NCBI RefSeq assembly: GCF_006345805.1
Contig: NC_042998.1
Coordinates: 41,664,001 to 41,728,000, forward strand
DNA: 64,000 nucleotides
Direction: 5' to 3'
From: Octopus sinensis
Lineage: Eukaryota
The translations under genes and the position numbers were made by a program. The notes under the pieces were generated by a model. The model was not told where the DNA came from. It searched no databases and saw only the letters and a list, made by a program, of their open reading frames with translations. Each line of letters begins with the position of its first letter. Positions within the stretch are counted from its first letter, which is position 1. Shown piece after piece: positions 1,461 through 58,026 of the stretch.

Positions 1461-4400
1461 GTAAGAAATATTTGATTAATCAATTTATTATTTTAATATC
1501 TGTGGTTAGGAAGCTTGCTTCCTAGCCATATGGTTTCAGGTTCAGTCCCATGCTTGGCACCTTGGGCAAGTGTCTTCTGCTATAGCCTCGTAATTGAATT
1601 TGGTAGGCAGAAGTTATCATCGGCTTTTTTTTTCATATTACCAATTTAAATTATGTTTTTTAAAAATTGTATTTTATTTAGAGGAAAAGCTATGAAGGCA
1701 GCCTATTATTCAGTAATATTAATTCTAATTGCTAAAGCTTAGAGTGACAGAGGAAAAGAGACAGGTTTTGCACAGAATTTAAGTAAATAGTTGCATTAAG
1801 TTTTTCTGGGTTACTGCATGTGTTTCTACACATACATCATAACAATAGTTCACTAACATAAATAACTTTTAACATATTAACACAAGTCAACACCCATAAA
1901 ACTTATTCTAATGAATCCAAAAGAGTTGCAGTTCATTCATTATAAACCTCTTGGCAAAAAAAAACTGGCATGTAAAAAGCACTATTCAAACATGATCGAT
2001 GCCAGGCCCACCTGACTAGCCCCTGTGCTGGTGGCATGTAAAAAGCACGCACTACACTCTCGGAGTGGTTGGCATTAGGAAGGGTATCCAGCTGTAGAAA
2101 CATTGGAAGATCAGATTGAAACCTGGTGCAGCTGCTGGCTCTACAGACTTCACTCAAACCGTCCAACACATGTCAGCATGGAAAACGGACGTTAAATGAT
2201 GATGATTGAAGCATTGCATCAGTTGTGCTGGGTCTTTGAATTTCTTTGTGCATTTTTAGCTAGCTAAACTATCATAAAGGGTGTTTGTATTGGAGAGCAA
2301 ACTGTTGGTTTCTTGTTTATAACAAATTTGTAATGATATTTTTGTTTTCATTCCAGAAATGTCTGAGTTGTTGTTTGAATGTTACCATGTCCCTAAAGTT
2401 GCTTATGGCAATGATGCATTATTCAGTTTGTACAAAAATCATCCAAAACCAGGTATTCTCATTATTCATTTAAAATCCTTTCAAATATGTCATTAACTTT
2501 TTTTTTTGTTACAATTTTTCTTCATCAGGTAAATTGGAAAAAAAGACAGACGTGTTCGTTTGTATCCATCTCTCAAATGAAAATAATAGGAAATTTGGAA
2601 AATTGTTTTTAAAATAGGTGTATCCTGCATTGAATAGCTTAGGGTGGATTTAATTTGTGAAATCTTTCTATTTATGAATTTTAGTTCTATTTTTGCTGAG
2701 CTGATAGCCTCAACTACAGATAAGGATCTCTAGTGATGGGAATAATTCCTTAAAAAAAGGAAACGTGAATGATGCACATGTTGACAAACAAGAAAAAGTA
2801 AAATATCAGAAAGTTATAAAAGTTTGCAAATTGTTGATAATCTTTCTCATGTTAACTCCTGTTATTTTCCTTCTATTGCCCCAGACATTGAACAGCATTA
2901 TAACAGCTTTTATCGTCTACATGTTAAATGAAATCACTTTTTTAGATAATGTAATTCCTTCCTTTACTCATCTTCTCTTTACATTATGCAAGCCCAATTT
3001 TACATTTTTCACTTGACACAGACAAAACTGTTTTTTTTAGTTAATAAATCCCTAGATATGTTTTATATTATTAATTGTATCAGTCCATATCAGCCAAATG
3101 TCCTTTGGCACATTTTACTTTCTTAAAGGAAAAACACAATCTGATCTGAGACAAATATAGAATGGTCAGAACTGTTAAATTTGATAATGTCTGTCTATCT
3201 GGGGCTTAACGACAATCTTTGTATTGATAATTTTCCATACAGATGTTAAATTTTAAAATTTACTCTATACATTAGCAAGAGTTTTCTTTTTCTTTTATTA
3301 TCAGAATCAGCAAATGCTTTAATAGTTGACTGTGGTTATCAAACAACTCATGTCATTCCCTTTATAAATGGTCAAATTGTTGCTGAGAATTGTCGCCGTC
3401 TAAATTTAGGTGGTTTACATCTTGATTCATTCCTACACAGACTTCTTCAGTTAAAATATCCCAATCATTTGGCTGCAATAACTCTTAGCCGTGCTGAAGT
3501 AAGTATAATTCTTGAAAATTTTATCAGAATTTGCATTTTTCTTTGCAAACTGAACATATTGTTAAAGCAGTTTATATTTTTTCTTAATGTATGCTGGATT
3601 CAGTTTTTTTCTTTTTCCTACCAGCTCTTATTGCCTTCCATATTAATCAACTGAAAGACTTTTGGCTTATTGGCCAGAAAGCTGGGATTAAGGACTAATG
3701 AAACATAATAAAGACAGACTCACAGCAAGTGTAAAGAAATGAGCTAATGGATCTTCAATTAAATCATTAGCAGATTGCAAGGGAGCAAATAAAAAAAATT
3801 CTTGGTATTAGTCAAGTTTGACGAAGTACACTGTATGCTTCCCAGATTCACCACAAGATACAGTTACTGAGGGAAATCATTTTTTCCATTACGTACACAC
3901 CTTTAAGCATTGCATTCAAAAACTTTCTATTTTTGCCAAACTCTTTGATCTTCCTTTCTTTACAAAGATCTGGTGTGTCCTATTTCCAAGTAGTGTAACA
4001 TCACTGAGTATACAGGTGTCTTGCCATGAATTGCAACATCTCAAATGGAGATGGTTGTGGTAATCTTTTTAATCTCCTATCTCTCTTTTTTGATCCAGTT
4101 TCCATAGTCAGATTTGAGATTTCTATAGTTCATATCTTTAAGAATTCTGGCAAAGTGAAGTCGTTGCCTGCCATTACCAATGTTGTTTAGCCATGTAGGC
4201 TCTCTTTAATGTACTTGGTTTAGTTGTCACCTACATGCTTCCTTCAGTACATTGACTGGCTAGTTATTTCTAATTGAACAATTTAATTCAATTACACTTC
4301 AATCTATTACATGCAATCTTGACACTTCATCTTTTTGCTAGAGCAAGAATTTTTCCATACAAATATCAAAGGAAGTCTAGTACCAAGCTCTACATATGTA

Positions 4401-7400
4401 TGAATAAAATAACTAAAACCCTCAGAAGCTACCACAAGGACATAAAATCTGACTTCACATCCAAAGCATTACTAAAACTCCATTTGAAAACTAGCTTTCT
4501 TTTTCAGAGCAATTGCTAACTTATAACAAAGCTCATGACTACTGCTGCATATTCAAATATTTAGTACTGTATTAAAAACAAACTGACGAAAGTTCCAACA
4601 TAATGACTTCTAATCCAGAGATAGCCATTGTCTCTTTTCTGAACTAGCATATTCTCTTGATTCAGCTCACTTCTGTTTGTTGTCATTCCCCCCAGATTTT
4701 CACACAAATCATTGCTTCCACAACTGCAGCACTCTAGAATAATTTGGCCATCTGCTTAGAGCCACCCATCAATCTGGGAGAACCTTCAAATGTCACAGTG
4801 GCTGCCATCTTGACAAGATACTTGAAGAAATTTCTGGGAGAACAAGTGCTATAAGCTTGTTCTAGGTGAAATTTTAGATCAGGCTGGAGGTGTCATTGGC
4901 TCGCATTCATTAAAAAAATGCTATGTTTGTTAGTGAATACATCGTATTGTCATTAAAAAATACTATATTTATTAGTGTGAAAGATACTGTTCAATCATCT
5001 AATAGAATGAAGATTTAGCTCTAAATAATGTAGTAGATACATACACATATGCACTAAAAAAGAAAAGAAATGGCAAAGAATTTTAAAAACAATATTTAAT
5101 TAACTATGTTAATACAGATACTGTACATTTTTGTTTTCTTTTAATAAGACAAATATGTCTGGGTTGAAATCTACTTAAAATGGAAATATACTACAAAGAC
5201 AATGAAATTAATCAACACTTTAGTATAAAAAATTAAGTCACGGAAAACCCATTACAGACGTTAAAGAAATATGAATTGGATTTGTAAATTTTCCAATGAG
5301 ACTGAATTATAGGCAGAGTTTATCTCCATCTCAATATGCCTTTACTTACGAGTACCTGACAAGTTGCTACTCTTACTGGCTGATGAATAAGCAACAGGCA
5401 TACCCTGGCTGTTGTAGGTGTACATTGGAGCACTGGGGTTGTTCTTCACTTGCATGCATGTCATTGGGTTTCCAACCATTGGCATGTTAGAAGCATTTGC
5501 TGCTGACATCATATAGACATCTGAATACTTTAGGTCTTTGTCTAAGTATTTGTGTTGCTGTGAGTAGGGCAATTGGCTATAGTTTGCTCCTGACATATTC
5601 ATTGCTTGCATCTGTTGTACTGCAGCAGCTCCATACATCTGATACTGGGGCAACGGTGCAGAACTCATCTGCATGAGGTTTGGATAGGTAGAATTCTGAA
5701 GTCCAACAGACATCATACCTAGAATAAGAAATAAATAAATTTGTGTACATTTGTCTATGAATAAAAAAAAAGTGGAGCAGAGTTTGTAAATATCTACATA
5801 GTACTCTACCTAATATTTTCTAAATACAAGAAAATTTTGCCTGAATAGAGGATATCCAGAAGAAAATTAGAGCCAAAAATTTTCTCAAATTATAATTGAA
5901 AGTGTAACAAGAAAAAACTGAAGTATTTATTACACAACTAAACAATCATTCATGAAATATAATTAATGTCTATAGTGTACATAAACTGTATATGCATGAT
6001 GAATTAAAAAAATATTTTTTTTAAATTCCGGATTCACATCCAATAGGTGTGGTACAAATTTAACCTACATATTCAGATGATTTACAACTTTAATCTGTTG
6101 TCGCCAATATATAAATTTCTTCTGATGTAAGTTGTAAATACACCTGAAATATAAACACTAACACAACACAAGAGGTGATATCACTGGAAATTTTGTCAAG
6201 TATATACACATATTGTGCCCTTCTGATTGATTTTGCTTTTGCAAATATAGTCTACTTTATTTCTTATGTATGATTGTTAATTCAGTGAATATCATTTTTG
6301 TGAACCATGTGCATTTGTATAAGTTTATATTTTTGTATAAGTTGTGTATTAGTTTTATATTTTGCAATTTTATGCTTTTCTATGGAAAAGTATAAAAACG
6401 CAGAAAACAAGCAAAACGTAAAAAAAAAAAAGAAAGATACTTATCTGTTATGTGTGTGCGATATCTCATCTGTGTGGAAAGTGATAAAGCACAATATACA
6501 CTGCAAAACAACATCCATGATAAACAATGAAAGAAAACATTGCTACTTGGAGAAGCTCACCTCTTTTTGAGAGGTTTTACTAGCATTTTTTTATAAGTTT
6601 ACTTCTTTAATCTCACTTTTGGATGTTTTTTTTTTTAATGAAAAAGTATCTTTATTTCATATAAAGTCCTAGGGCAACTTTTAGAGTAATATTTTAAAAA
6701 TACTTTTATTCAAAGCTATGAAAAAAATTGTGTAATTCATTAAAATCATTCAAGCATCTGAATTAGTTACATATTTCTTATTTTACTATGGTTCCTGATT
6801 AACTAATTATAACATAATGAAAACCTTTAATTATCTAAGCTTATAACAGCATCAAAATTCTTATCTCAAAAAAAGAAAAAATGTAATTGAATTACAATTT
6901 AGTTTTCTAATACTTTAACATGAAAATCCTACAGAAGCCAAATTTCCATTGTTCAGTTTACCATGATTCTATTTCTATGAATTTCCAAAAAATAATTGGT
7001 TATTTACATTTTTTAAAAATTAAGCTAACACTAAAAAAGAAAAAAAATTTTTTAACATAGTGAAGAAGGAATTTTATCACAAGTATATTTGAGATTTTAA
7101 TGATGTAAAAAATATAATTGGAGGATTTACTCATATTTTTCAGAAATAATTTCTGACAAACATCAATATATTTATAGACTTACTTGAAATAAAGTTAAAT
7201 AAATTTAAAATTAAAAATATTTATCACAAGATAAAATGGCTAATTTTTTTTTTTTTTATGTAATCTAATGCATTCTAATGTTGAAAACAAATGTTTTCAT
7301 ATAATTAATATTGAAAAAATGCAGTCAAAACTGAGAATATTGTTAATCAAATATTTAATAGCTTAATTTTTTTTCTTCTTCAATAAATCTCTGAAAATTG

Positions 7401-10400
7401 GTCAAAAAAAAAAAAAAACTTTATAAACCATTAAAAGCTATTGGATTTGGTCAAAATGTTTTCACAATGGCTTCACTAAGAAAGTATTTCAAAATTTAGA
7501 AACTTAAACATACCTGGTGTCTGATTAACAAACATGCTTTGCTGACCATAAGGGTAACCAGTATTTACACTGATACCTTGTTGAGAACCGCTACCATACA
7601 TGATTCCTGGAAGAGTGACTGCTACCCCCTGTGCTGGCTGCAACACCATACCGGAACCTACTGACCAGTCTTGTGATTTAGTGACATATTGTTTTGTTGC
7701 ATCATATGCTTTTGATGTATCATAACCTTTTGACATTTTTCCGGTTCAGTTTCCAAACTTGCTGAGTTTAGGTTCCTTTCTGATATTCAAATCCTTTCAG
7801 AACTTGAAATTTCAAAGAGACAAAGAAAAAGAAAAGAAAATTATAAGCAGTGACAAGTTTTTGTTACTGTAAATGTACAATGTCTTTGTTATGCAATTGA
7901 TACTTGGTTTGCTTCTATATTAACCTCTTAAAATAAATTTCAGTCTTGAGCTGATTTTTTTTTAATGATTTCTACATGTGTAGTAGAGTGTAATTAACCA
8001 AATTTTCCCTTACTACAGGAGTTAGTACAACACCACACACATATGGCAGTAAACTACCATGAAGAGCTAGCAAAATGGGCTGACTATGAGTATTATGAAG
8101 CTAATGTTCATAAAATCCAATTGCCATTCACTCTGGTAAGTTATCTTACCTTTAAATTTATATCATTAATGCTACTATGATTTGAATGGTCATATGAAGT
8201 AATTAATTCTTGAAGTTCTTTATGAAGTAGGATTTCATAAATTGTTTAAGACCTGGTATAAAGATGAAAATTCAAATTGATGAAATTAAAACTTATTTAT
8301 GCCAATTAAATGTTAAGCAAATTCTATGAAGTTAACTTGATTTTCTTTTATTGGGATTACTGCTCTCCAATTTTTAATCATTACCATTTGTATAAGATTT
8401 TTAATGAACATTTATAACCAACCAACATCATCAATTTATTAGTTTTAGCAGTCACTTTATATTATGCATAATACAAATAAATAGCTAGAATGACAGAATT
8501 CTAGTTTAAACACCTCATACAACCTTATGTGGTGGTGTGGGAGATTTTCATAAAATTTCTGCAAATTTGTGTTCTACAAATGAGAATTCATACGATTATG
8601 CAAAAATATTTTTTTGGAGTATGATTTAAGGGCAATTTAGCTGTTATTTTTAGCACATATCACAACCACCTGATACTGACCTCGTGTCTTTGTCACTCTG
8701 ACACGTATGTTTTTCAATATTTTTCTCCATATGAACACATTTAATGGGATGCTGATGCACCTAAAGATGCTATATTGCCGGGATTTAAGCAAAAAATTCG
8801 GACTATTCATATTTTTTTAAAAATTCAAAAAGTGGGACCTTTAGGATTTAAAAAGGAATTTTTATCTTTCCATAATCGTATGAATGTATTCTTGTGTGCA
8901 GAACAAAAATTCACTAAGACTTTCTGAAAATTCCAAAAAATAAAAAAGTTATGAGGGGTTATATGGGGTGCTTAAACCGGAATTTCGCCGCTAAAATAAC
9001 TTCAATATGACAAAGACGTAAAAAGAAAACCAACAACTTAGCAGTGAGAAATGCAAAAGTCCAGTCTACAAATGAAAAGCCAATGCATTGAAGGGAGTTC
9101 ATTAAACATGATTTATACATTAATATAGAGACAGTAATACAGATGAGACTCAAGATAAAATTAGCTCGAAAGAAGCGAAATTGTGTATTAGAATTAGCAA
9201 AGAAAGGACGGCTCGGGTTTGCAAAAGTGTTAGTGATATTAATAACAAAACAAACGTTTCGAGTATCAGTTAAAGAAACTGAATGTCTAAGGATGTTAGG
9301 GAAAAAAAATCTAAAGCAGTTTATATTTGCTATGAACCTTGCGAAGTGTAGTGACTACATGCAATGTTTTTATGGCAGAGATAAACACTTACAAAACTTA
9401 CACTTATTTACAAAACAAATACGTTTTACTTTTTTTTTCGGTACAAACTGTAAATCTGTTATTTAGTTAATTACTGAGAATTAGACGCTGTCTTGTGAGA
9501 TTCATGCTGAAAATAATGATGGAGTGGAGAGACAATTTTGTAGAATTAATATCAACTATAACGTGATAAGTGGATACTCGTATTTTTTTTTTTTAATTTG
9601 GACAGAGGAAAAATTAGAGGAAATTGATCTAAAATCCACTCATTTGAAATAAGAATCGAAAATGAAGATAAGGATGTAGTATATATGCAATTGATTTTGG
9701 ATCTTACAAATAATTACAAGTTAATTTGTAGTGATAAGCAGAAATGCAGAGCTAAATGAAAACAAGCTCACATGTGGTGTAAACGGCATCATATTCCACT
9801 TCAAGGGAGCTGGTAATTTTAAGGCATATTTATGATGGGCTGAGGTTAAGAAATAAACCGTCATGTTTGTAATCAAATAAAAAAAAAGTCTTATTTACGA
9901 TACGAGAAAACGAAAAGGTAAATTTTTACCATTACACCAGTCTCATTTTGAAGGTGTGGTTTACATAAATAATGAGTGATTTCCGACTATTTTGATGATC
10001 AGTCGCTCAAAATACATCAAAAGCATACATTTACCCAAAATACGACGGGTATAAATTTCACTTTCAAAACCAAACGAGTACAATTGTAAATCCATACCGT
10101 TTAAATGTTTTCTATAGTTCTATAGTGTTTATATCTATGTGAGACACAGGTTCAGATGCTAGTCTGATAAGGGGTAACTTCCCGGTAAATTTTTATTACA
10201 CTCGTCTCATTTTGAGGGGTGGTTTACCTAAAAGAACGAATAATTTCCGGCGCTTCTGATGATCAGAAAGATGGGAAAATTACGGGTGTAATTGTAAAAA
10301 ATTTATCAACGAAAATGAAGTTTTATAAAGTCGAATCCATAAAGAAAAAGCATTCTGTAAAGACCTTCATTGAAAAATTAATTTATGTACTATTTAGCTC

Positions 10401-13400
10401 TTTCAATCCAACTTCCATCATTAAATACATTCCACAACCCTCTTCATAATAGCGAGTTCTGATTCAATTATCTTTTAAATTTGACTCTTTAAAAACTGGA
10501 TTCATTTCATAACTGAAATAATTTACTAATTTTTTTTTTTTAAATAAAAATATCAACCACTGAAGGGGTCACGATTGAGTGTTATATAAAACAGTAAAGT
10601 TACACTTCATCTTTTTTAAAATCCCTTCCTATTTTTGCTTTGTTCTAAAAATTGACGTTTGAAGAACTTTTGCTAATTAAACAAATATAACTCAAAAATT
10701 TTTGCTTTTTAAACAAATTTAACCCAAAAAATTTTTGTTATTTAAACAAATTTCACTAAAAAATTTTTACTTATATAAATGAAGTAATTTTGTTCTGTAT
10801 TTATGTTTAAAAAATCCAAGATATTGCATCAATTCTTTAGTTGAAACTGTTTTTCTTTTTAACTATCAAAAGAAATGTGTTTTTTTTATCGTCATTCTAA
10901 TATTTAATTTTGATATAGTTGAGCATTAGTTGACAGAAGCATCTCTCCATTTTTGCGGATTGAGTGGGATGGATGATATGGGCCTCGTTAAATATGAGTC
11001 CACCTAAAGAATTTACAATAAATGGTTAAAAAAAAAAAAAGGTTTAAAACATTTTAGCTATATATTGAAATTAATTTCGGTATTTGGAAGTTTTAAAGAG
11101 AGAGGCTGTAAAATCTTATTAATAACAGATAAAAATAATGCACGTCAACCAAGCCAGCCATTCTGTGAGTTCACTGAATGGGAAGAATGTCGAGGGAATA
11201 TCGAAATTATTTCGAAAACAAAAATTTAGTAGGTATACTTCGATATTTCCTCACATGGTGATGGAGCTTTAATAAATTAGAGCTAATATTAGATTTTTGG
11301 TCCACAGTTCTATGTATATTACCTTTTTAAATCGATTTAAAATAAAAATAATGGCCATTAGAATTTGGAAAAAGCCATTGTAGGATTGTAGCAGCAACGA
11401 TGTATATTTTAGGAAAAGGACGTCAGTAAATGATTTTATACTGTGCTATTCATTATATTTTATTTCCAAAATGTCAAGGAAATCACTTTAAAATCAAGAA
11501 AATGAAATTAAAACCCCCTTTCTGATGTTTAAAACGCCCATGACTAATCCCTTCGTTGAAAGGCGTTAGAACCAAATTACCAGAACATGGAAAGAAAAGA
11601 CCTGATGGAGAAACCCCAATTCCGTTAACAGAATAAGAAGAAACCTTACTTTATATAAATATATATTTTCCACTTAATTGTGAGTAGCAGCAGTCTTGAT
11701 ACGAATGATGGAAGTTTTGTGATGGCACACAAGCTTGTTGAAGAAATGTCAATTATTTGCTTCTAAAGGCTAGCAAGTCAATGAATGATTCACATACATA
11801 CGCGCAGCAATGGCTTCTTCCTTCACTGCTGCTAAGATCAACATTATCGAACTTCTTTTTTAAAATTGTGTATGTGTGTAGGTGTGTATGTGTGTGCGCG
11901 TGTGTCCGCGCGCGTGCGTGCGGACGTGCGTGCGAGCGTGCGTGCATGCATATACGTATGTATGTATGTACGTATGTATGTAATTTTTCACACAGTTACT
12001 CAAGGGTCGGGAGTTTCGTGAAATCAGGCACGCACGCACACATAAACATCTCTTGGAAATTTGTTTTCCAAGAATTGTGGTTCAATCTGAAACCGTGTGT
12101 TGTTGAAACTAATATTATTATATTTCGGAAATAGTCGATAAAAACTGATTAGTGTTTATAGTGTTTATTACGATGACTCTACCTAAATTAAAACATAAAC
12201 AATTGTTATAATCCTTTTATTCATTTCAGCCATGTGGCTGCGGTCATCCTGGAGCTATATATATATATAAAGCTGTTGTATTCGAAACACGCGCAGACCG
12301 TTTTATATATTATTTATTTGATTTTTTTGGCCTAAATAAATTTGAATTGTTTCCTCGTGGAAGGACTTTATACGATTCAAATTGAATTTGCAGTTTGGTA
12401 CTAGAATATTATCAACTCTCTAGATTTTATTCCATTATTAGTCATAGTAAACTAGATTCTCATTTAAATTTCACCTTATAATCAGCACTAAAGTCTGTTT
12501 GATAAATGTAAACACACGCATATGTAAGCCATTGGATTAAATGCTTTGTATACTAAATCCTCATTTTTTATTTCGTTTATAAAGATAGATTCAGTCGTTT
12601 ATTTTCATTTTCAGTGCCCTATTTTTTTTCTCTACATTACATTATCCTGATCAGAGTCGTTCCATAACGACCATCACGTTTTTTTATATTTCATATATCA
12701 GGAGATTTATTACCCAGTGCGCGAAAGATTAATAAACAAAGTAGTCCATATGTTCCGTGTACGCGATAAGATTTCCGTATCCCTTTTTTAGTTAGCGTCC
12801 GAGATCATGGCTTTAACGGTTTTTATTATAATTCTCAAAATAAAATATTTTGTTTTTTCTAATTGAACAGAAGGGAACTAGCTTGTCGCTGTTTATAGTT
12901 AGATCGAAAAAGATTCGCTTTTGTTTACAACAAAATTCAAATCAGTAAAAAATACATATGGCTCTCCCCCCACCTCAACCCTTGTGATTTTCCTCATAGA
13001 GATGAACTTGCATCGAGCTGCTGAGCCTGCAGCATGGTTTCGATTCTCGGTTATGGCCATTTTATATAAGTAGTGCCGCCGCTACCCACACATGCAAATG
13101 ATGAATTACTTAAAATCAAGTACAACTCCAAAATAAAAGCTTGAATAATTAAACAATGGCTTCTTTAATGAATATTTAAAAAAAAACTATCTTTATTTCT
13201 TATTAAGTATTGTAGGGGAAGTCAAAATTATTTATTACTACTATTGTAAAATATATTCATTTGAAGAATTAAAAAATGTGAAAGAACAATATGCGAACAT
13301 CAAATGTTAGGTCTTTGTGGTGACAGTGTAAAATCAAGCGATATGTCATGAATATTATATTAATTATCCAGTCATATTGAAATACCATTCCTTCAAATTT

Positions 13401-23400: not shown

Positions 23401-26400
23401 ACGACAACGCAAAATAGACATGGCCAAACGAAGGACACTAGCCTCTCAGCAAAGGATGAAAATTATCTCCCAACTCGCACAAAGTAGGTTTTATTTTCTG
23501 ATTGTTATTTAAAATAGTTGTTTTTTCTCTCTGCACTGATTCTTTGTAATGTATTTTATCTTAGTAATTGCAGTTGTCACCTATGCAGTATGACATCTTG
23601 TGTTGAGCAGGCAGCATATATGCCACATTTTTGTCCATTTAATGGCAAATGTATCACAAAAGCATTTACGCACTCAGGAAAAATAACACCAGCAGATGGT
23701 ATAGAAAAAGAAGTATATTGGGCTCATGGAAAATACATTTAAAATTAGACATCGCCTTCACTCCTTCTATTGCATTCAGACACAGAATTAAATCTACCTA
23801 TCTCAGTACTCTTAGAATAGGCTTCTCCTATCGTTGACTCCTCCCCTGTCTGTTATCATCATCATCATCGTTTAACGTCCGTTTTCCGCGCTAGCACGGG
23901 TTGGACAGTTCAACCGGGGTCTGGGAAGCCAGGGGCTGCACCAGGCTCCAGTCTGATCTGGCAGAGTTTCTACAGCTGGATGCCCTTCCTAACGCCAACC
24001 ACTCCGCGAGTGTAGTGGGTGCTTTTTACGTGCCACCTGCACAGGTGCCAGGGGGGTCCGGCATCGGCCACAATCGGTTGGAGCTTTTAACGTGCCACCA
24101 GCACGGAAGCCAGCCAAGGCGGCGCTGACAACGGCCACGTTCAGGAGGTGCTTTTTATGTACCACCGGCACTGGAGCCAGTCGAGGCAGCGCTGGCATCG
24201 GCCACGTTCGGACGGTGCTTTTTATGTGCCACTGGCACACAAGCCAGTCGAGGCGGCGCTGCATCGGCCACGTTTGGATGGTGCTTTTTATGTGCTACTG
24301 GCACAGAAGCCAGTTGAGGCGGCGCTGCTTTTTATGTGCCACCGGCACAGGTATCACAACTAGTATTTCCATTGATTTTTATTTCGATGTTCATGTTCAT
24401 GACTCAACAGGTCTCCTCAAGCACAGCGGGACGTTCTGGAATCCAGGGTACTTTGAATGGGCAGGGGCTATGCGGAACTGGTGCAGGAAGCAGCCCGGGT
24501 CTTTGCAGTCACAGCATATCTCCAGAGATCTCGGTCCTTCGCCATTGCCTCAGTGAAGCCCAACGCTCTGAGGTCATGCTTGACTACCTCATCCCATGTC
24601 TTCCTGGGTCTACCTCTCCCCCTGATACCTTCAACTGTTTGGGAGTGGCACTTCTTCACACATCTCTCCTCATCCATCCGCAGTACATGACCATACCATC
24701 GCAAGCGTCGCTCTTGCACACCACATCTGATGCTTCTTATGTCCAGCATTTCTCTCAGGGTGCTTACACTCTGTCGTGCATGCACACTGACATTACACAT
24801 CCAGCGGATCATACTAGCTTAATTTCTTTCAAGTCTATGCATGTCCTCTGCAGTCACAGCCCATGTTTCACTACCGTGAAGCATGGCAGTTCGCACACAT
24901 GCATCATACAACCTACCTTTCACTCTGAGCGAGAGACCCTTTGTCGCCAGTAGGGGTAGGAGCTTTCTGAACTTTGCCCAGGCTATTCGTATTCTAGTGG
25001 TGATACTCTCTGAGCATCCACCTCCACTACTAACTTGGTCACCCAGGTAGCGGAAACTATCAACTACTTCTAGTTTCTCCCCCTGGAGTGTGATGGAATC
25101 TGTTTTCTGAGTGTCTGTGGTGTCTATTGTCCCTGTGCATCTGCCGCACATGAAAGCTATCTTATCAGTTAATTTCCCTTTGATGTTGCTGCACCTCTTA
25201 TGCGTCCATAGCTTACATTGGGTGCATCTTATGGAGTTTCTACCTACACCTTTCCTACAGATCGAGCAGGGCCACCTGCCCGATGGGGTGTGTGCTGAGT
25301 TCGCCTTTCTGCTTACTATAACTTTGGTCTTTGCTACATTTACTCTAAGGCCCTTTGATTCTAACCCTTGCTTCCACACCCGAAATTTCTTTTCTAGTTC
25401 CGGTAGTGATTCTGCTATGAGAGCCAGGTCATCAGCATAGAGGAGCTCCCAGGGGCATCCTGTTTTGAATTCCTCTGTTATTGCCTGGAGGACTATGATG
25501 AATAAAAGGGGACTGAGCGCTGAGCCTTGGTGTACACCTACTTCTACCCGGAATTCTTCACTATATTCGTTGCCAATCCTAACCTTACTGACAGCCTCTC
25601 TGTATAGAGCCTGTACAGCCCTTATTAGCCATTCGTCAATCTCCAGTTTCCATATCGACCACCAGATAAGGGATCGGGGAACCCTGTCAAAGGCTTTCTC
25701 CAAGTCCACAAAAGCTATGTAGAGGGGTTTATCTTTAGCTAGGTACTTCTCCTGTAGTTGTCGGACCAGGAATAATATAGCATCAGTGGTGCTTCTACCC
25801 GGCACAAAACCGAACTGCATCTCATCTAAGCAAATTCTCTCCCTAATGAGATGGGTTATGACCCTCTCTGTGACCTTCATCACCTGATCCAACAGTTTAA
25901 TACCCCTGTAGTTATTTCTATCTAGAGCATCACTCTTACCCTTGTAGCAGTTGACTATGGTGCTGCTACGCCAGTCATTGGGTATGACTCCATTATGAAC
26001 TACCTGGTTTACAATGCGGGTGACTAGGCCATAGCCCACGTAGCCAGCTGTTTTAAGCATCTCAGCAGTGATTCCTGATGGGCCGGGGGCTTTACCTGGT
26101 TTCATATCCTTAATTGCCTTAACTACAAGGGAGCTGTCTATTCAGATAGCTGGTCCCTCTACTGGGTCAACATTTGGCAGGCTCTCCTCCTCCCATTCAT
26201 TCTCCTCATTCAGCAGTCTTTCATAATGGCTTCTCCAAGCCTCTTTCTTTTCACCAACATTAAAAGCAAGTGCCCCATCATCCATGCGGACACATTTCTC
26301 TCCTGTAACATCACTATTTTCTCTCACACACTGTCTGGTAATCCGAAATACCTCAGCTCTTTGGTCCTCACGTCGCTGGACATTGGCAAACTTCTTCTTT

Positions 26401-29400
26401 TCTGCTACATCTTTGGCTATGTATACCTGCCGCCCAGCCTCCCTTTTGGCTACCTGGTACAGTTCCCTGCTACCCCCATCCCTCCAGGCTTTCCAGGCCT
26501 GTCTCTTTGCACTAATGGCTTTGTCTACTGCACTATTCCACCACCACGTAACTCTAGGTCTGGAAGGGACTTTGCACCATCCACAGACTTGGTCTGTGGC
26601 ACTCAGCAAGCTGTCCCGTAGGAATTCCCAGCTACCTTCTATGTTCGACGTCTGAAGCTCCTCCTCCCTCTCATCAAATTTCTTGATGAGGATGTCCCTA
26701 AATCTCTGACCATGTGAAGTGTTCTTTAGCTTCCAAATCCTTCTTTTCTGGATTGGTTTGTTTCTTGGAGTCCTTCTGGCCTCAAGCTTAAAGTCACTGA
26801 TGATTAGCCTATGCCGAGGGATACATTCTTCACCTGGGAGGGTCTTTGTATTTAAGAGCAACCCTGCATCCTGCTGTCTGGTGAGGATGAAGTCTATTTG
26901 GCTAGCGGAGTCTCCTGACTGATAGGTTATAAGGTGGCAGTCAGGCTTCCTGAAGTTAGTGTTGCAGATTAAAAGGTTACATGCATCACAGAATTTCAGT
27001 AGTCTAGTTCCCTCATCATTTCTGGTGCCAATACCATGGCCACTGTGTACCCCAGTGAAGATACTTGATTCCCGTCCAACATGCCCATTAAAGTCTCCAC
27101 CCACAAAGATGAGGTCCTTGCCACTAGTCTTTGAGGTAGCCTGTAGAAGGGTATCATAAAAGTGGTCCTTCTGATCATTTGATAGTCCCGCTTGTGGGGC
27201 ATAGGCAGAGATAATCATAGCTGTGCCACTCTGTAGGACTAACCTGAGCTTAAGCACTCTATCGCAAACCCTGACAACCTCTATGACCTTATCCACCCAT
27301 TTCTCCGCAAGGAGAATGCCTACACCCCCTACACCATCCATGTTACCTTGCCAGAAGACTTTATACCTATGTGCCTTGCCCGTGAGGACCCTAGCTGAAG
27401 CACCTCTCCATCTTACCTCTTGTATGCAGCATACATCAACCCGTCTTCTCTCAAGCATCTCTACAATCTCACTAGACCTACCTTTCAATGTACCAACATT
27501 GACAGTGTCAACTCTGAAAACTGGGAAGGAGATGTGGGGAGGAGGGGAGCAATTCAGCGCCTGAAAAGAAGAGGGTTGTTGTGGTGGTGATCGTTTTTTA
27601 GGCATTTTTCATCTGATCTCTCTTCCAACCTGACAACATTCAAGCATTTAGGCATGATAAGGTTGTGGCCCCTGCCGTAGGCAGGAGCTGGTGTCAGCAG
27701 CGTTGTAAGCATAAACATTAAGGTCATTGATGATGTAGATGTAAGCTCTGTGGCAGAAATACTGAAATTCTAGGTGTTAGTAGCATTCTAAGCAAGCATT
27801 ATGGTCACTGAGTAATGTAGTTTAAGCAACGTAGCAGAAACATGGATATTCTAGTGTTGGGGGTGGGGTTCCAGCCGAGAGAAAAATTTTTGGTTGCATT
27901 GCGGCGGGGAAGGGTTCCAGCAGAGAGAAGAGAGAGAGAGGGAGAGAAAGTGGGGGGGGATTGTGTAGGTAATATAGGGGAGGACCAGTAGGGAGGGTTG
28001 GGGTAAGGAGAAACGATGACAGGTAGGGTTGGTGGCAGGTTCTAGACAGAATGAAACGTAGGATATCACGAGTGGGGGAGGGGACTGGAAGGAGATAGCC
28101 GGTTGAGGCAGTGACAGATTTCAAAACAGGAGGAAACGTAAGATAACTGGTTAAGTGGGACGGTTGATGAGCTGCTTCTATCTTGGGGGAGAGGGGCAGG
28201 GGTAGGGGTAATACATAGTGAAATAGCATATTGAGGAGGAGGGGTTGGAGGAATAGATACATGTAATGGTGGTGGGAGAAGGGATATCCGGTGTAGATGG
28301 TGTAAACAGAGTGTTCTCCGGTATTGGTGGTGGGGGTGGGAAAGGGCGGGCGCACCGCGAATGGCGAAGATTTTGATTGGGGACAATAGTGAGAAGAATT
28401 AAGCAATCGGGGTTGAAGAAGGTAACAGAGAAACGAACGAATTAACTTCATACCGGGGGGGTTAAAAAAATTAAAGGATTATATTTTGTGGGGAATCGTA
28501 TCAACATTTAGCTCATGAAAGAAAATAACAAGCAGATTTGTGAATAGATTCAAACATTTAAGCGTTAGCGGCAAATGTATGTATGTAGTACGAGGATCGG
28601 AAGAAATGAAATGAGAATTCTTAGCTTGCTTTGGACATCGCTGTGGTCGAAGAAAGAATGAGTAGAAGAGGAGCACAAGGTGATATTTAAGTAGACTGAC
28701 CGGAAGAAGTGAGTTGGAGAAAGACAGAAGTTTTGATTGAGGACAGTAATGGCGAAGATTTATGTTCAGCATTAATCATTTCTTTTTGTTATCCCTTTCT
28801 CCACCTTCCAACTTTATCATATACTTTTCACTATATTCTCTTTTTGTTTTTTTTTGTTTTTTTCCTGTTTTAACTTCTTTCCTTATGATGAATCTGCAAA
28901 TGTTGCAGCGACCAGACTTAGTTCTTAGGACCATATTCCTCACTGTGAATATAGTGTGTGTGTGTGATTGCAATGTCAGCTGTAAAAAAGTGTTGGTGGT
29001 GGGGCATGGAAATTAAATAAATCTTTTGTTATAGATTGTCTCAACATACTGAAACCTACAACAGATCATTACAAAACTTGCATTGAGACCAGTAAAAAGT
29101 GTGTTAAATAATTATTTGAAAGATCAAAAAAAATATCCTGAAACAAATAGTATTGAATTATTTTTTGTAATTATCTGTCGGCTTGAAGGTCATGAAAAGT
29201 AAATTGTAAATTCATATATAAAAAAATTCTCTTCATCTTTCAGATAACAAAAAACAAAAGGATGATAATTTTGGACAGAATGATGCTGATTGGGATGTGT
29301 ACAAGGAAATTGTGAGTATTATTCTGGAAGAAAATGAAATTTTCACAGACATCTTTTACTTGTTTTAGCTATTAGACTGAAGCCATGCTGGGGCACCACT

Positions 29401-45300: not shown

Positions 45301-48300
45301 GTGAGTGGCTGCACAGAAATAAGACAAACTACAAGAAATACAATGCACATATGAACTGAGATAACAGATGACCATTAACCAAAGTATACAGGAATGACGA
45401 CTATACTAAAATTGACATGTAGTTGCATATCTATGAATGCTGAGTGTAAAACAAATGTGTGACACCAGATGAGGGTACCAAAATAAGAAGAAGGGAAAGA
45501 AAGTAATGGCCAGATCACAGGATCCTGGACCTCATAGATAAGATGGTGGAAACCTTAGATGATTGATGATGATGTGGTTTAAATACAGTTATATAAAGCT
45601 GATGTAATTAAGAAAATTTATTATTATTTAGAAGAAGAGAACAATTAAAAAAATATTGATATGTTGTATGCCAGCATAGAAAGGTAAACATCAAGACAAA
45701 TTATGATATCAATGACATACAGAGAACGAAGAAAGAATAGCTTTTGTAGGTACTGGAACAAGAAGCTGCAAATGTTATGTTTTCTGGTAAGACATTTGCA
45801 AAAGGAAGTATATGGCCCCAAAAAAACCACACACTATTGTGACCTAAAAGCTTCTGAAAAGGGATAGTCTTCTATAACATAATGCTAATTTGGAAATATC
45901 TGTTTGTCAAATGTGAGGAAATTAAAAGTAGAATCAATAATCATCATAAATTTATTGGGTGTTTATAGTTCCTCTTCACCATAATATTTGAAGCCATCAT
46001 GAACTTTTTCAGTTTCAGCACTTTACTTGTAATGGAAGCTTATGTAATGTTTATGACAAGATTTTAAAAGAGGAACGTTATATATGAAGCAAAGAGTAGA
46101 TAAACAAAACAAAAAATTGGTTGCTGTTAACTTTAAAGAGATCACAAGTTATTTTCAGATTCATTCTTCACCAATTGTCATGTTATTGAAAAAAACAATA
46201 AAAGGTGATATCTTTCTCCATATGATCCTGAAAAGTCTAACAGGCCAGTTCTAGCACATCAGATATTGTGTACCTGCCAGTTCTAGCAAACCTGTTCTAG
46301 TGTGTCCTGAACTAAGTATTAGTTTTACATAATTTGTTTAGTGAGGCGAAAAGATGTTCAGACAATTAAATGATAACTTTAGCAAACTATACTCCAAAAC
46401 CTTTAACTATGAGAATTCAATTAAGAACTATTTATCAATAAGAGACTAAGCTCATTAATTCTTTTCAAATCTTGATACTTTGAATGAACATAACATTAAG
46501 ACATAAATATTTCATATGTTTTTTTTTTTTATGAACAATAAACAAATTTTCAAGCGGGAATACAAAACTGAATCTAACTTTTGATCATTATGCACCCCTG
46601 CCATTCTGATTTTATTAAGATGACATTTTTTATTATATAGAATAAAGAAAATTTCTAAAATATCACAAAACTTATAACATGAACAAATAAACAAGAAAAT
46701 GGAGCAGGGAGAAACAAATTTTATATATATACCTGTATAACCAGAGATCATATTTTCTTGAAATATGTTTCCTGGAGAATTTCGTCTCTTTTCCAAAATT
46801 TGGTCATTGTTATTTTGAAGTCTTTCTTCAAAAGTTGGATATTTCCGTCTCAACAAAGATTTCTCTGTATTTGTAAGGTAAGGATTAATATCATCATCTT
46901 TCAATGTTTTCTCTGTTGCATGCCCAAAAGTTTTTCCTATAGTAAACTTTAATTGTGGACAAAATCCAGTATATCTAAATTCAAAAAGTAAAACAAGTAA
47001 TATGTAATTAGGAAAAAACAAGAAAAAAAGATTTAATCTGAAAAATTAATTTTATATTTTTCACAAATATGTTATTTCTAACAGAATCTACCTACTTTCA
47101 TCAAAATTACTTTATAACCAATATTCATTGAACAAATTAGTTCATCATCATACCAGCAAAATATTCTACTTATGAAGGACAAACTTACAATTTCTTATAT
47201 TATAGTCATTACAGGATAGGACATGCAAGGTGGGCCAAATTCATTGTGTGTGTGTGGGGGGGGGATTTGCCCGGGCCCTGCTACAAAGGATATTTAGCAC
47301 TCAATACAGGGAGGCCTCACCTCTCAGCAATCTGACAGGAAGAGGCTCCCTTTCAATGTTCAAAGGCATCTTGACTTCTTAAAAAACTTAATGGATTCTC
47401 CCTTATGGTAAATAATTATAGATTTTGCCACTTTAGTGACACCAATTTATTCAATTAAAAAGCTGCTTTGGAGACAACTACAGAGAAAAAGAACACTCCT
47501 CAGAGGACATGCAAAAGCTTGAAAGAAATGAAGTTAGTCTGCTTCACTGGATGTGCAGTGTCAGTATACAGGAGCAACAGAACATGTCTTGAGAGTAGAA
47601 CTGGGCATAAGAGGCATCAAATGTGGTGTGCAAGAGAGATGACTGCCCTGCTGTGGTCATGTGAGGTATATGGACGAGGACAGCTGTGTCAAGAAATGCT
47701 GATCTCAAACTGTGAAGCAAACCTATGGAAGAGATAGACTCAGAAGACATTGGATGAGGTGGTGAAACATGATCTTTGAGTGTTGAATCTCATGGAGGTT
47801 GTGACTGTTGCCAGTGTCATGTAAATAGCATCCGTGAAATCTTAGCTGTGGCCTTAACTAGTGTCATGTAAATAGCACCTGCGCCAGTGGCATGTAAAAA
47901 GCACCCATTACACTCCCAAAGTGGTTGGCATTAGGCAGGGAATCCAGCCATAGAAACCATACCAAATCATACTGGAACTTGGTACAGCTCTCTGGCTTAC
48001 CAGCTCCAGTCACACCATCTAGCCCATGCCAATATAGAAAGTGGACATTAAATAATGATGATAATGACAAAGAAGCAAACAAAATATATTCAATGCATAA
48101 AAATAGTTTATAGTAAAAAGAAATGTTTTAATTTTATGCATATATTGATTTAATAAATTGAAAGCAAATTTTGATTTTAAAGTAAATCAACTATTTCTAG
48201 TTTAAATACAGTATCATTATAAAATCATTGTAAAATTTTTAATTTGAATAGCTTGAATTTTATGTGTGGTAGAACTGATCTGTGAAAAGGATAAATAAAA

Positions 48301-49321
48301 GTTTATTACATTTTTAAACAAATTTATTCTCAAAATTGTAGGTTGTTAATATGTTCACCATCACAATACATATATATATCATATCATACAGATAAGAAAG
48401 TCTAAATACATAGCTTATTTGAAATGCAACAACATATGTAGAATACCCAATCTTTCTGCTGTTTTCACGGCTATACTGTGTTCAAAATATTACTTTCTTG
48501 TCTGTATAATACAATACACATTCAATGCTTCCAAAAACAAAAAAAGTTTGTTTACATATGTTGTTGCATTTCAAATAAAATATCTATTTAGGGTTTAATT
48601 TGATGGAAATTGTTATCAGGAGGCAGTTTAGATTAATGATAAAGTACTCAGCCGGTATCTGAGAGGTGTGGGTTTGAGTCCCAGGGCTGCCTGCAAACAA
48701 CTTTTTCCATCATATAAGGGTAAAATACCCAGTTTTTCTGCTGTCTTCATGGCTATACTAAATTCAAAATATTACTTAAATATCCAAAACACAAAAAAGG
48801 TTGTTTACATATTTTGTTGCATACACACATACACACATATATACACATACATACATACATACATACATACACATCAGTTGATTTTCAGTTATACTGTGAA
48901 TCACATTAGTTATCCAAGCATGCATGTCATCCATAGGACAAAATTTCATTGAATAAATAGTAATCATCAGCATATCCCCATAGAATAAATTTCAAGTGAC
49001 TATTAAATTTTAAAAAATTAAACAATAAAATTTTTTAATAGATGATGACAAAATAGATGTATCAGGCTCCTAAGTATTCTTTACAATTTATTTCAATCAT
49101 ATTATAGACACTAGGTTTTAAAAATTAAAAAAAACTTCAAATTTAAATTTGATCAAGGATTTTATAATGACTCTATATAAGAAATAAATTTGAAATATAT
49201 TTTTAAAAATCTCTCTAAAAAAATCAAACAAAATTTTGAGAATATAGAAATAAATGTTTTACCCAGGTATATGAGATTTAGGTGCTTTGGAATATAAATT
49301 TTCATTATTTCTAACGACCAT
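39309..49321 (-). CDS. FAM166B: FAM166/CIMIP2-family ciliary microtubule inner protein, 296 aa, complement join(49321-49263,46974-46733,44565-44420,40573-40435,40155-39940,39397-39309)
   Basis: Six GT-AG exons with consistent phases 2,1,0,1,1 total 891 nt. Repeated motifs HIPGYTGFCPQLKFTIGKTFG, MISGYTGCIP, DPQKYHIPGYAGFVP, GRVYPELTHQAL and IVPMYTGHIPG..SFGKTLG parallel FAM166A/B as recalled. The exact paralogue is uncertain. Confidence 0.88.
39940..40155 (-). CDS. FAM166B: FAM166-like exon 5 (GYAGFVPRYRPLIGRVYPELTHQAL...YTGHIP)
   Basis: aatttcag acceptor, G|gtaaag donor. Confidence 0.9.
40435..40573 (-). CDS. FAM166B: FAM166-like exon 4 (KLPEVP...DNIDPQKYHIP)
   Basis: tatttttag acceptor, G|gtaatg donor, phase 0 to 1. 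Confidence 0.85.
40850..41974 (-). mobile_element. Rearranged 5'-truncated RTE with an internal ~270-bp duplication
   Basis: 40901-41165 is nearly identical to 41701-41974. Confidence 0.85.
42704..43512 (-). mobile_element. RTE 3' fragment including the 3'UTR tandem array
   Basis: catcatcatcgtttaacgtccgctttccatactagc tail and ~67-bp units. Confidence 0.85.
44420..44565 (-). CDS. FAM166B: FAM166-like exon 3 (GCIPCLQNYHGQTFRNIWRDSLTEF...)
   Basis: ccattttag acceptor; the donor gat|gtaaag was chosen for phase compatibility. Confidence 0.8.
46733..46974 (-). CDS. FAM166B: FAM166-like exon 2 (YTGFCPQLKFTIGKTFGHAT...MISGYT)
   Basis: gaatttag acceptor, gtatat donor. Confidence 0.9.
47495..48066 (+). 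mobile_element. RTE C-terminal and 3'UTR fragment
   Basis: Degenerate RWMCNVS/LRWYGHV-coding region and a ggacattaaataatgatgat tail. Confidence 0.8.
48415..48578. repeat. 164-bp fold-back with perfect 26-bp inverted repeats
   Basis: ttatttgaaatgcaacaacatatgta at 48415-48440 and its reverse complement at 48553-48578. Confidence 0.85.
48622..48691 (+). pseudogene. tRNA-like sequence (tRNA pseudogene or SINE head)
   Basis: GGCAG...CTGCC acceptor stem, CTCAG/CTGAG anticodon stem with loop CCGGTAT, B-box-like GGTTTGAGTCCC and a degraded D-arm. Confidence 0.6.
49263..49321 (-). CDS. FAM166B: FAM166-like exon 1 (MVVRNNENLYSKAPKSHIPG)
   Basis: aaaaATGg start, GG|gtaaaa donor, phase 2 matches the next exon. 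Confidence 0.8.
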
Positions 49322-51563: not shown

Positions 51564-52818
51564 CAGGAGTTGGACAAAATAATGGAAACACCTTAAAATT
51601 TCAAACAAATATATCTTAATATGGGGTAGGACCACTTTTGGCAGTAATTACAGCTTGAATTTTACAAGGTATGACTCATACAAAGTTTGAATTGTTTCCA
51701 AAGAAATTTTTCTCTTTTCTTCAGCTAAAACAGTCTCCAGTTCTTGTAGTGATGTTGGTGGAAGATATCAACACCTTACTTGTTTTTCTAAAATGCACAA
51801 TAAATGTTAAATAAACTTGTTTTTCTAAAACGCATGATAAATGTTCAATAATATTGGGATCTGGGGAATGTGGTAGCCAGATAAGATGTTCAACTTCACT
51901 AGAATGTTCCTTGTGCCATTCAGTAACACCAACGAAAGATTGCCCCCCCCCACCACCACCACCAAAAAAAAAACCAGTTCCGCAACCATAGGATGAAGTT
52001 GATAAGATAAACTGCTTGAATTGTCTTGACTATTAATTCTGCCATGAAGGGAATCCATTGGGCCAGCAGATTTCCAAGATATAATCCCCCATATCAGCAC
52101 AGATCCTCCTCCATGTTTAACAGTTAGAAGAAGGTAGTCTGGGTCAAATGCTTCTTTTGGCTGTCTCCACCTGTATACTCAGTTGGTGGTCGGAAATAAG
52201 GTAAAGGATGACTTGTCTGAGAAAATAAGATTCTGCCACTGCTCTAGGGACCAATTCTGTAGGTTTTTACTCCACTCTAAATGCTTTGCAACGTTTGTGT
52301 TTGAAAGTAATGGTTTTCTGATTGCAGCTCCTGGCGAACAGTTTTTGTGGCAACTGAGTTCTCGAAGTAATCATTAAGCTCTGCAGTAATTTTGGGAGCT
52401 GCACTGTGATCCTTTCTAACAATTTGCGCAAGAGTCCGACGGTCCCTATCTGAAAGTTTTGGTTTTCTTCCAGATTTTGTTTCGACAAGGAGGTTTTTCC
52501 CTCACTCTCAAAGGCTGTCATTACTTTTGACACAGTACTTCTTGATACATCAAACATTTTGGCTGTTTTTATTATGCTAGCGCCTGCCATATGAGCACCA
52601 ACAATTTGACCTTTTTGAAAGTCTGATAGATCTGTCATTTTAATGAATTCTAATTACCTTTTTCTGATAATATCTGAAAACAAACAGAAATTTTAGCAAA
52701 ACATATTAAGCAACACTAATAATAAATCAAAAAACATAAAAATAAACAAGCTTTCGATGGTTTTATAGATATTTCAAAAATATAATGCTAGGTGTTTCCA
52801 TTATTTTGTCCAACCCCC

Positions 52819-52819
<1 letters not shown>
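51564..52819 (-). mobile_element. Tc1/mariner element with both 30-bp TIRs and a defective transposase
   Basis: TIRs caggagttggacaaaataatggaaacacct and aggtgtttccattattttgtccaacccccg. Translations include MTDLSDFQKGQIVGA, FSDKSSF, VKHGGGSVLIWG and WLPHSPDPNIIEHL. Confidence 0.92.
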
Positions 52820-53163
<344 letters not shown>

Positions 53164-53479
53164 TGTGGCTCTTTGGTAAGAAACTTGGTTCTGAAGCACA
53201 TCATCCTGGATTCTGTACCACTGTGTGGTAACTTGGCATGTGTCTTCTGCTGTAGCCTCAGACCAACCAAAGCCATGTGAGTGGATTTCGTAGACAGAAA
53301 CTGAAAGAAATCAATTATATATATACTAGCATTATGACCCGGCATTGCCGGGTCATAGTGCTAGTGCATGTATATATGTGTACATATTACATGTACAACT
53401 ATATATATACATCTACACATAAAATACAAAGTTATATCTTGATATCGCTAGTGATAACAATACTCAAAATATATAACAG

Positions 53480-54614: not shown

Positions 54615-55170
54615 ATTATTAGTGCAGTCTGGATGGATGGTGCAATCCCTAAGGACTGGAAGGATGCAATTATTCTTCCTCTATATAAAGGAAAAGGAGC
54701 CAGAACAACGTGTGGTAACTACAGAGGTATTTCTCTACTATCAGCTGCTGGCAAGGTTCTGGCAAATATTCTTCTTACCCATCTGAATGGGTGTCTTGTA
54801 AATGATGTCCTATCTGAATCTCAATGTGGCTTCCGATCTGGTAGAGAGACAATGGATATGATTTTCAGAGCAAGACAGATGCAGGAGAAGTGCTATGAGC
54901 AGAATATGGATCTTGTCCAGGTATTCATTAACAAAGGCCTTTGATACTGTAAATAGGGCCTTTCTATGGAAAATACTTGGCAAACTTGGATGTCCGGATC
55001 ACTTTGTATCTATAGTTAAATCATTTCATGATGGGATGGAGGCTTGGGTCACGTTGGTGGTGCCATGGTGGGACCCATTCCTGTAGAGAATGGTGTCAAG
55101 CAGGGTGACATCCTTGCCCCAACTCTCTTTTCTTTGTACTTTGCTGCTGCTTTTACTCATGCTTTTGCTA
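54615..55170 (+). mobile_element. BovB-type RTE RT fragment
   Basis: IPKDWKDAIILPLYKGKG..NYRGISLL..SESQCGFRSGR..LTKAFDTVNR..GVKQGDILAPTLF, with frameshifts. Confidence 0.9.
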
Positions 55171-57530: not shown

Positions 57531-57669
57531 TCAACAAAATACTGATAGTTATTGGACGCAGTTTTTTCAACGAGACCCTACAAAAAATAATCTACATTGT
57601 ATCTAATATGTGCATACCACCAATGATTGAGCAGAAATTAAAAATAATCATGGTTTTGAAAAATTTAGT

Positions 57670-57726
57670 TTGTATTACCACTATATATACTTATATATAT
57701 ATACTTATATATATATACTATATATA

Positions 57727-57822
<96 letters not shown>

Positions 57823-58026
57823 GTATATATATATGTATATATATACACACACACACACATATATATACACACACACACATATATATATACACACACACAC
57901 ATATATATACACACACATATATACACACACACACATATACATATATATATATACACACACACACACCACACACACACACATATACATATATATATATACA
58001 CAACACACACACACACACACATATAC

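Follow-up and report, generated by a model that had tools for sequence, protein, structure and literature searches.

Several self-assembling proteins, such as reflectins, suckerins and beak proteins, are well-known lineage-specific features of cephalopods. Beyond these, tyrosine-rich low-complexity (LC) domains of FUS and hnRNPs self-associate via aromatic residues (PMC7682574). The methionine-rich domains of TDP-43 (10 Met in 152 amino acids) and yeast ataxin-2 (Pbp1; 24 Met) form droplets or labile cross-beta polymers, which are melted by H2O2 and restored by methionine sulfoxide reductases (PMC7682574). Here we describe a gene in a 64,000-nucleotide window of the Octopus sinensis genome (GCA_006345805.1, chromosome CM016860.1) whose 199-amino-acid (aa) product unites tyrosine stickers with oxidisable methionine, the pair of chemical features most closely associated with regulated phase separation. 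The gene lies antisense within the gene for actin-related protein 5 (ARP5), a subunit of the INO80 complex, and we refer to it as the nested gene. In contrast to the reflectins, suckerins and beak proteins, it is single-copy and its product is predicted to be intracellular and wholly low-complexity. The constraint on the protein is unusually tight for a low-complexity sequence.

The nested gene is genuine: it has three exons, codes for protein and yields a spliced mRNA (Table 1). Its 600-nt coding sequence (CDS) is formed by joining minus-strand positions 7736..7514 and 5718..5342 in phase 1 and is identical to the O. sinensis copy; an exact-sequence look-up of the protein places it in O. sinensis and in O. 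bimaculoides. RNA-seq contigs from a sister Octopus species (L008-L010; SRR16213284-6) carry the uninterrupted, spliced 600-nt open reading frame (ORF) and fall on the window in blocks at about 11864-11652, 7802-7509 and 5720-5132. These contigs bear out both coding exons and the junction between them, as well as the stop, the 3' end and a non-coding exon in the 5' untranslated region (5'UTR). An in-frame TGA stands four codons upstream of the ATG, and the position of the coding intron, at the NQTPG/MMS junction, is common to Octopus, Argonauta and a second lineage introduced below. A preliminary description of the window, made without database searches, had proposed a candidate new self-assembling or condensate-forming cephalopod protein and named lack of expression among the outcomes that would count against it; the spliced transcripts carry the exact ORF. 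As a gene model the protein is not new, being already in RefSeq as "uncharacterized protein LOC115224337 / LOC106873457", with a 199-aa model in O. bimaculoides, O. sinensis and Argonauta hians. Its characterisation is new, in that a literature search by LOC and XP identifiers found no paper naming the gene. Continuation of the ORF into a downstream exon, via a donor-like CGTAAGTAA at the stop, was considered and rejected: the transcripts are colinear through CGTAAGTAA into the 3'UTR, and the G[TP]RK-stop ending is conserved across relatives.

On the opposite strand, a 715-aa gene model with an Actin domain (PF00022) spans the locus in O. sinensis, O. bimaculoides and Argonauta. Two consecutive ARP5 exons lie in the window, at 3310-3504 and 8013-8162, and when joined they match human ARP5 residues 182-281 without a gap (E 1e-34). 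The first of these lies beyond the 3' end of the nested gene on the opposite strand, the nested coding exons sit in the intron between the two, and the nested 5'UTR exon is found one ARP5 intron further on. The first intron of the nested gene thus contains the ARP5 exon at 8013-8162, which makes the arrangement interleaved rather than simply nested. Gene table and exon matches agree with the preliminary description, which had called the protein nested, and place it antisense within ARP5, in an intron-hosted arrangement without any exon overlap (nested exons at 5132-5718, 7514-7802 and 11650-11864). The same layout, including the 5'UTR exon beyond an ARP5 exon, is present on a 378-kb genomic contig of the second lineage (L011), where the ARP5 exons are on the minus strand. 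Nesting in ARP5 and the 5'UTR exon are conserved in both Argonauta and the second lineage. Directly upstream of the nested 5'UTR exon is a CA/ACGC-rich low-complexity tract, at 11870-11990.

The composition of the 199-aa protein is strongly skewed: S27, Q21, M20, G17, Y17, A16, V13, P13, N13, K10, T10, L9, D6 and I2, with one each of W, F, H, C and R, and no E. Measured against Swiss-Prot-like residue frequencies, a generic background to which all of the following probabilities refer, Met is found 20 times where 4.8 are expected (P about 1e-7) and Glu not at all where 13.4 are expected (P about 1e-6). Strong deviations are also seen for Tyr (P about 9e-5), Gln (P about 4e-5), Arg (P about 1.5e-4), Ser and Ile. 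G/S/Q/N/Y/M make up 58% of the protein (G+S+Q+N+Y, 48%) and aliphatics 12%. AT-bias was rejected as the source of the Met/Tyr richness, since it goes with no enrichment of Phe, Ile or Lys (F1, I2), and GC content is 43% in the CDS vs 24% in the intron. Human proteins average 2.2% Met with a maximum of 13.8% (PMC9312190); the nested protein has 10%. Methionine-rich prion-like domains (MR-PrLDs) have been defined, in a census of the human ones, by a Met-biased low-complexity region (fLPS P < 1e-5) with at least 5 Met, together with a PLAAC probability of at least 0.9 (PMC9312190). The 20 Met of the nested protein, with a binomial tail of about 1e-7 as a surrogate for fLPS and not fLPS itself, show the Met bias that this definition asks for.

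Charge, too, is distributed unevenly. Net charge is +5 and the charged fraction 0.085, and charged residues occur only at 3-23, 131-141, 166, 190 and 198-199, so that residues 24-130 form a 107-residue stretch without any charge. None of 5000 shuffles clustered charge as tightly. A 19-aa Kyte-Doolittle scan reached a maximum window of 1.01, and the N-terminal 25 aa have a mean of -1.36; the protein therefore has no recognisable signal peptide or transmembrane segment, and it is predicted to belong to the cytosolic or nuclear class. Most of what the preliminary description had said about the chain holds on the spliced sequence: its counts (20 Met, 17 Tyr, 21 Gln, no Glu, single Arg, Cys, Trp, Phe and His) are exact, its two charge clusters, an N-terminal triple hexad (residues 3-20) and a central patch (131-143), are real, and its statement that signal peptide and transmembrane segment are missing agrees with the hydropathy values. 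A point to be narrowed is the label glutamate-free, which is true of the 199 octopus residues and fails as a conserved trait, with 2 Glu in the second lineage.

A word-indexed search of 5.8 billion clusters returned three clusters, corresponding to Octopus, Argonauta and the second lineage (about 46-52% identity). The Argonauta hians orthologue also has 199 aa, with 84% identity. Profile hmmsearch read every one of 1.84 billion representatives at 50% identity and hit just the two that belong to the family itself, under HMMER bias filters that disfavour low-complexity relatives. The family thus appears to be cephalopod-restricted as far as the searched databases reach, and the exact match in Octopus sinensis bears out the preliminary description's assignment to a cephalopod. 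The second lineage is known from spliced transcript contigs and from the genomic contig described above. It is probably a decapodiform, as suggested by saturated dS (synonymous divergence) and an identity of about 50%. Some of its contigs come from ERR1712142/ERR1712042 and JGI 3300018952/3300018694, which we take to be Tara Oceans metatranscriptomes; if so, they would derive from planktonic animals.

The substitution pattern shows strong purifying selection on the family. The protein is identical in three Octopus species; pairwise comparison of their CDSs gives 6, 9 and 5 substitutions, all of them synonymous. With about 10 changes on the Octopus tree and 79% non-synonymous sites, the chance of seeing zero non-synonymous changes is about 1e-7. 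The ratio of non-synonymous to synonymous divergence (dN/dS) is 0.12 for Octopus vs Argonauta; within the second lineage, a pair of taxa gives 0.085. When O. sinensis is compared with O. bimaculoides, the intron mismatches at 6.6% of aligned sites and has many indels, the CDS at 1.0% and the 3'UTR at 1.4%. The low mismatch of the 3'UTR (5132-5341) relative to the intron suggests regulatory constraint there; in the second lineage, the 3'UTR extends over at least 2.9 kb (L012/L013 vs L011).

To see where the constraint falls, we used a conservation alignment of four sequences (A1), in which 91 of the 199 positions are invariant. Invariant positions are enriched in Tyr (13/17, P 0.01) and Gln (15/21, P 0.02) and depleted in Thr (0/10), Leu (1/9), Val (2/13) and Ser (7/27). 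Across the four sequences, totals hardly move: 20, 20, 21 and 21 for Met and 17, 18, 17 and 17 for Tyr. This constancy is maintained by a balanced turnover, in which Met occupies 7 octopus-only and 8 second-lineage-only positions, and Tyr 4 of each. The combination of conserved sites with constant totals through turnover argues that position and composition are both under selection. Small indels are scattered along the alignment.

Conservation is concentrated in a series of blocks: MSKGY..K.YD..KQY, NQTPGMMS.G, PLPQYQ.Y, Y.Q..Y.QQ.KYLDKD, VGN...CM, MY.Y.S.GM.VAY and G.RK. Within the triple hexad, K3, Y5, K9, Y11, D12, K15, Q16, Y17 and K20 are invariant, and QHKYLDK (residues 129-135) is among the most conserved segments. 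Internal duplication was rejected as an account of the sequence: hhalign of the two halves gave E 0.085 over 13 columns, and the only repeat seen was a PYxQQ motif that occurs twice. Two textbook motifs were also set aside. YPNL is the ALIX-type and PSAP the TSG101-type 'late domain' binding consensus, and they occur at residues 86-89 (5675-5686) and 169-172 (5426-5437), respectively, of the Octopus and Argonauta proteins. As the second lineage conserves neither, both probably just follow from the composition.

Searches for a fold came back empty. The only Pfam hit, DUF6198 (E 0.034; 14 bits vs a cut-off of 27), involves one of the four family members and is noise, as is the sole match of a PDB profile search, a PHA granule protein (E 0.56). 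No confident folded-domain match, which the preliminary description had named as a reason to abandon its proposal, arose from the Pfam, PDB and profile searches. AlphaFold2, run on the four-sequence alignment, gave a mean pLDDT of 37, a pTM of 0.10 and no secondary structure in 5/5 models. Only 5 residues, all in the triple hexad, reach a pLDDT of 50-70, and the mean over each of the two 10-residue blocks at the N-terminus is 47. In a folded domain, an aliphatic core would be conserved. Because it is Tyr and Gln that are conserved here, and the few aliphatics are free to vary, disorder fits better than a folded core, and we infer a disordered, low-charge, low-complexity polypeptide.

Reflectins invite comparison, as they too are cephalopod-restricted, intracellular, Met/Tyr-rich and predicted to be disordered. 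Their canonical domain is [M/F]D-X5-MD-X5-MD-X3/4 (as quoted in bioRxiv 10.64898/2026.04.14.718489), and a second study describes conserved MDM tripeptides (bioRxiv 10.1101/2025.08.12.669908). Regular-expression searches of the four family members found no canonical motif, no MD dipeptide and no MDM. A relaxed definition, [M-Z-(X)<=5] in at least three repeats, where Z is D/S/Q/Y/N/F/H (bioRxiv 10.64898/2026.04.14.718489), yields one minimal 3-repeat match in Octopus and Argonauta, MQAMNMS (residues 111-117; 6% coverage), and none in the second lineage. As 28% of same-sequence shuffles have at least one match, this is no more than composition predicts. Reflectins have Arg-rich cationic linkers, whereas the nested protein has one Arg and 6 Asp in 199 residues. 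In addition, reflectins form a tandem family, in contrast to this single-copy gene in ARP5. The profile hmmsearch of 1.84e9 representatives returned no reflectin; it did not extend to comparing the family profile directly with one built from reflectins. Judged by its sequence, the nested protein is not a reflectin, in keeping with the earlier remark that it lacks both the reflectin motif and the Arg/Asp content.

The closest functional analogues of the nested protein would instead be Met-rich LC domains. Like those of TDP-43 and ataxin-2, it has a polar, low-charge sequence, a maintained high Met load and no predicted stable fold; some of its Met are invariant, including the pair M76-M77. Unlike them, it stands alone and is found only in cephalopods, whereas the TDP-43 and ataxin-2 domains are ancient, widespread and attached to folded RNA-binding or Lsm modules. 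It has 17 Tyr vs 1 in the TDP-43 LC domain, and there is no sequence homology. With the FET (FUS/EWS/TAF15) and hnRNP proteins it shares about 9.5% aromatics (19 in 199 residues) in a G/S/Q/N-rich, polar and nearly uncharged context, as expected of aromatic stickers, and its Tyr are preferentially conserved. It differs in that its aromatic spacing is not significantly even, in lacking RGG and RRM modules and any homology, and in its 10% Met vs one Met in the FUS LC domain (PMC7682574).

Taking these likenesses together, we tentatively favour, at somewhat less than even confidence, a disordered protein acting through multivalent Tyr/Gln/Met contacts and carrying conserved charged docking or regulatory motifs. 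On this view the protein would work through a multitude of weak contacts, to which Tyr and Gln at conserved positions and a maintained set of about 20 Met contribute. Such contacts point to self-association or to co-assembly with partners, giving a condensate or a labile cross-beta structure. Specific docking or regulation may fall to a trio of conserved charged elements: the N-terminal (K-x-Y-[DE]-x-x)x3, the central QQxKYLDKD and the C-terminal G-[TP]-R-K. Being so rich in Met, any such assembly would be expected to respond to methionine oxidation, as the LC domains of TDP-43 and yeast ataxin-2 do. Analogy with Tyr-rich and Met-rich low-complexity domains makes it plausible that the protein self-assembles or forms condensates, perhaps with redox tuning through Met.

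Other explanations for this unusual gene should be weighed. The transcript could be a non-coding antisense RNA of ARP5 with a fortuitous ORF. Arguing for this, it is antisense in its host gene and its 3'UTR is unusually conserved (1.4% mismatch vs 6.6% in the intron). Counter to this, ORF, start, stop and intron phase have been kept over saturating synonymous divergence, dN/dS is 0.09-0.12, and non-synonymous changes are missing from three Octopus species. The substitution pattern effectively refutes the fortuitous ORF, and we give it next to no credence. A small protein with a novel fold, overlooked by the tools because the family is tiny, would explain the strong conservation, and it draws further support from an AlphaFold run on only four sequences and from the compact side of the Uversky plot (below). 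Yet aliphatics, at 12%, are the least conserved class, 107 residues in a row are uncharged, 58% of the chain is G/S/Q/N/Y/M, no secondary structure appears in five models and indels are scattered; we regard such a fold as improbable. Less probable still, and by some distance, is a reflectin that has diverged very far, or some other cephalopod material protein with an optical or structural role. The Met/Tyr richness, the cephalopod restriction, the lack of a signal peptide and the single relaxed-domain match, MQAMNMS, speak for it. Against these stand the missing canonical motif, MD and MDM, one Arg in place of Arg-rich cationic linkers, a relaxed match that is not found in the second lineage and that 28% of shuffles equal, and an exhaustive profile search that gave no reflectin.

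The main rival is a disordered adaptor that uses short linear motifs and folds on defined partners, with Met, Tyr and Gln supplying interface chemistry rather than driving phase separation. We consider it unlikely on balance, though a serious contender, and it is not exclusive with multivalent contacts. It would account well for the very tight positional conservation (identity in three Octopus species, dN/dS about 0.1), for discrete invariant blocks (MSKGY, TPGMMS, PLPQYQ, QQxKYLDKD, GM.VAY and G.RK) and for aromatic spacing that is not specially even. On the other hand, no partner or known motif class was identified, the only textbook motifs, YPNL and PSAP, are missing from the second lineage, and the balanced Met/Tyr turnover points to selection on composition as well. 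Several observations do weigh against the multivalent-contact reading. Identity across Octopus and a dN/dS near 0.1 exceed what constraint on composition alone would require and could mean specific binding. The classic Q/N-rich rule for yeast-type prion domains, attributed to Michelitsch and Weissman, reportedly asks for 30 Q/N per 80 aa, and the maximum here is 21 per 80, so that the term prion-like does not apply in that sense. The even spacing expected of stickers is not significant (P 0.23): the coefficient of variation of aromatic gaps is 0.75 vs 0.89 +/- 0.18 in shuffles, 23% of which are as even or more. The Uversky charge-hydropathy plot puts the protein on the 'compact' side (H 0.446 vs a boundary of 0.422), and low AlphaFold confidence from four sequences may reflect missing information as much as disorder.

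A bolder version of the multivalent-contact reading, which we hold to be rather unlikely, would make the protein a coleoid-specific scaffold. Here the whole chain would be both Tyr-sticker and Met-rich and would form a redox-switched condensate or cross-beta assembly, by analogy with the LC domains above, encoded by a gene fixed antisense in ARP5 for hundreds of millions of years and possibly co-regulated with it. In its restriction to one clade, short length, low complexity and antisense position in an old housekeeping gene, the nested gene resembles other intron-nested orphan genes. It differs from typical young orphans in being old (present in Octopus, Argonauta and a lineage at saturated dS), strongly constrained and conserved in position. 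If the protein does self-assemble, it would offer a small, naturally occurring system in which to study condensates or materials tunable by redox state, and an example of a functional, old and constrained orphan gene. If it does not, it would still be a clean case of position-specific constraint without a predicted fold.

Table 1. Coordinates of the nested gene, its host exons and retrotransposon ORFs in the window
Feature	Position	Strand	Remarks
Exon 1, non-coding 5'UTR	11650..11864	-	L008-L010 at 93-94% identity, then jump to 7802; 5' limit approximate
Exon 1 donor GT	11649-11648	-	sequence reading
Exon 2 acceptor AG	7804-7803	-	polypyrimidine tract precedes
Exon 2	7514..7802	-	66 nt 5'UTR + CDS residues 1-75; ATG 7736-7734
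Exon 2 donor GT	at 7513	-	sequence reading
Coding intron, phase-1 GT..AG	5719..7513	-	1795 nt, 24% GC; AG acceptor 5720-5719
Exon 3, coding part	5342..5718	-	residues 75 (part) to 199; stop TAA 5344-5342
3'UTR, ~210 nt	5132..5341	-	ATTAAA poly(A) signal 5145-5140; contigs end at about 5132-5194
N-terminal triple hexad K-x-Y-[DE]-x-x, codons 3-20	7677..7730	-	alignment A1; all lineages
Central charged patch, codons 131-143	5513..5551	-	KYLDKD core invariant in 4/4 aligned sequences
Host exon, ARP5	3310..3504	+	88% identity to matching L011 exon; boundaries approximate
Next host exon, ARP5	8013..8162	+	70% identity to L011 exon; boundaries approximate
Retrotransposon ORF, AP-endonuclease domain	26142-27605	-	
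Retrotransposon ORF, reverse transcriptase + PHD-like zinc finger	24819-26105	-	

Elsewhere in the window, the minus strand carries a near-complete retrotransposon without long terminal repeats (non-LTR) at 24468-27605, with 47-50% GC vs 35% for the window; besides the two ORFs in Table 1 it has a 114-aa tail ORF. Transposon debris is present at 52267-52638 (-), 56929-57243 (-) and 54633-54944 (+), and consists of a Tc1/mariner-type helix-turn-helix (HTH; Sleeping-Beauty-like), a Tc5 transposase HTH and a reverse-transcriptase fragment. A tRNA-like sequence at 48622-48692 (+) scores 34.5 bits, above the Rfam tRNA gathering score, with no ARAGORN call, and is likely a tRNA-derived short interspersed element (SINE) or a pseudogene. 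Long TA/CA-type microsatellites at 52800-53350, 57600-58200 and 11870-11990 produce spurious Tyr/Ile/His/Thr-rich ORFs in several frames. The ORF at 59466-59822 (+), 118 aa long and Lys/Glu/Thr-rich, has no Pfam match and may be an exon of a neighbouring gene. A further ORF, at 46512-47021 (-), encodes a CMI2B-like (ciliary microtubule inner protein 2B) domain (PF10629, E 2e-8) and is probably an exon of another minus-strand gene.

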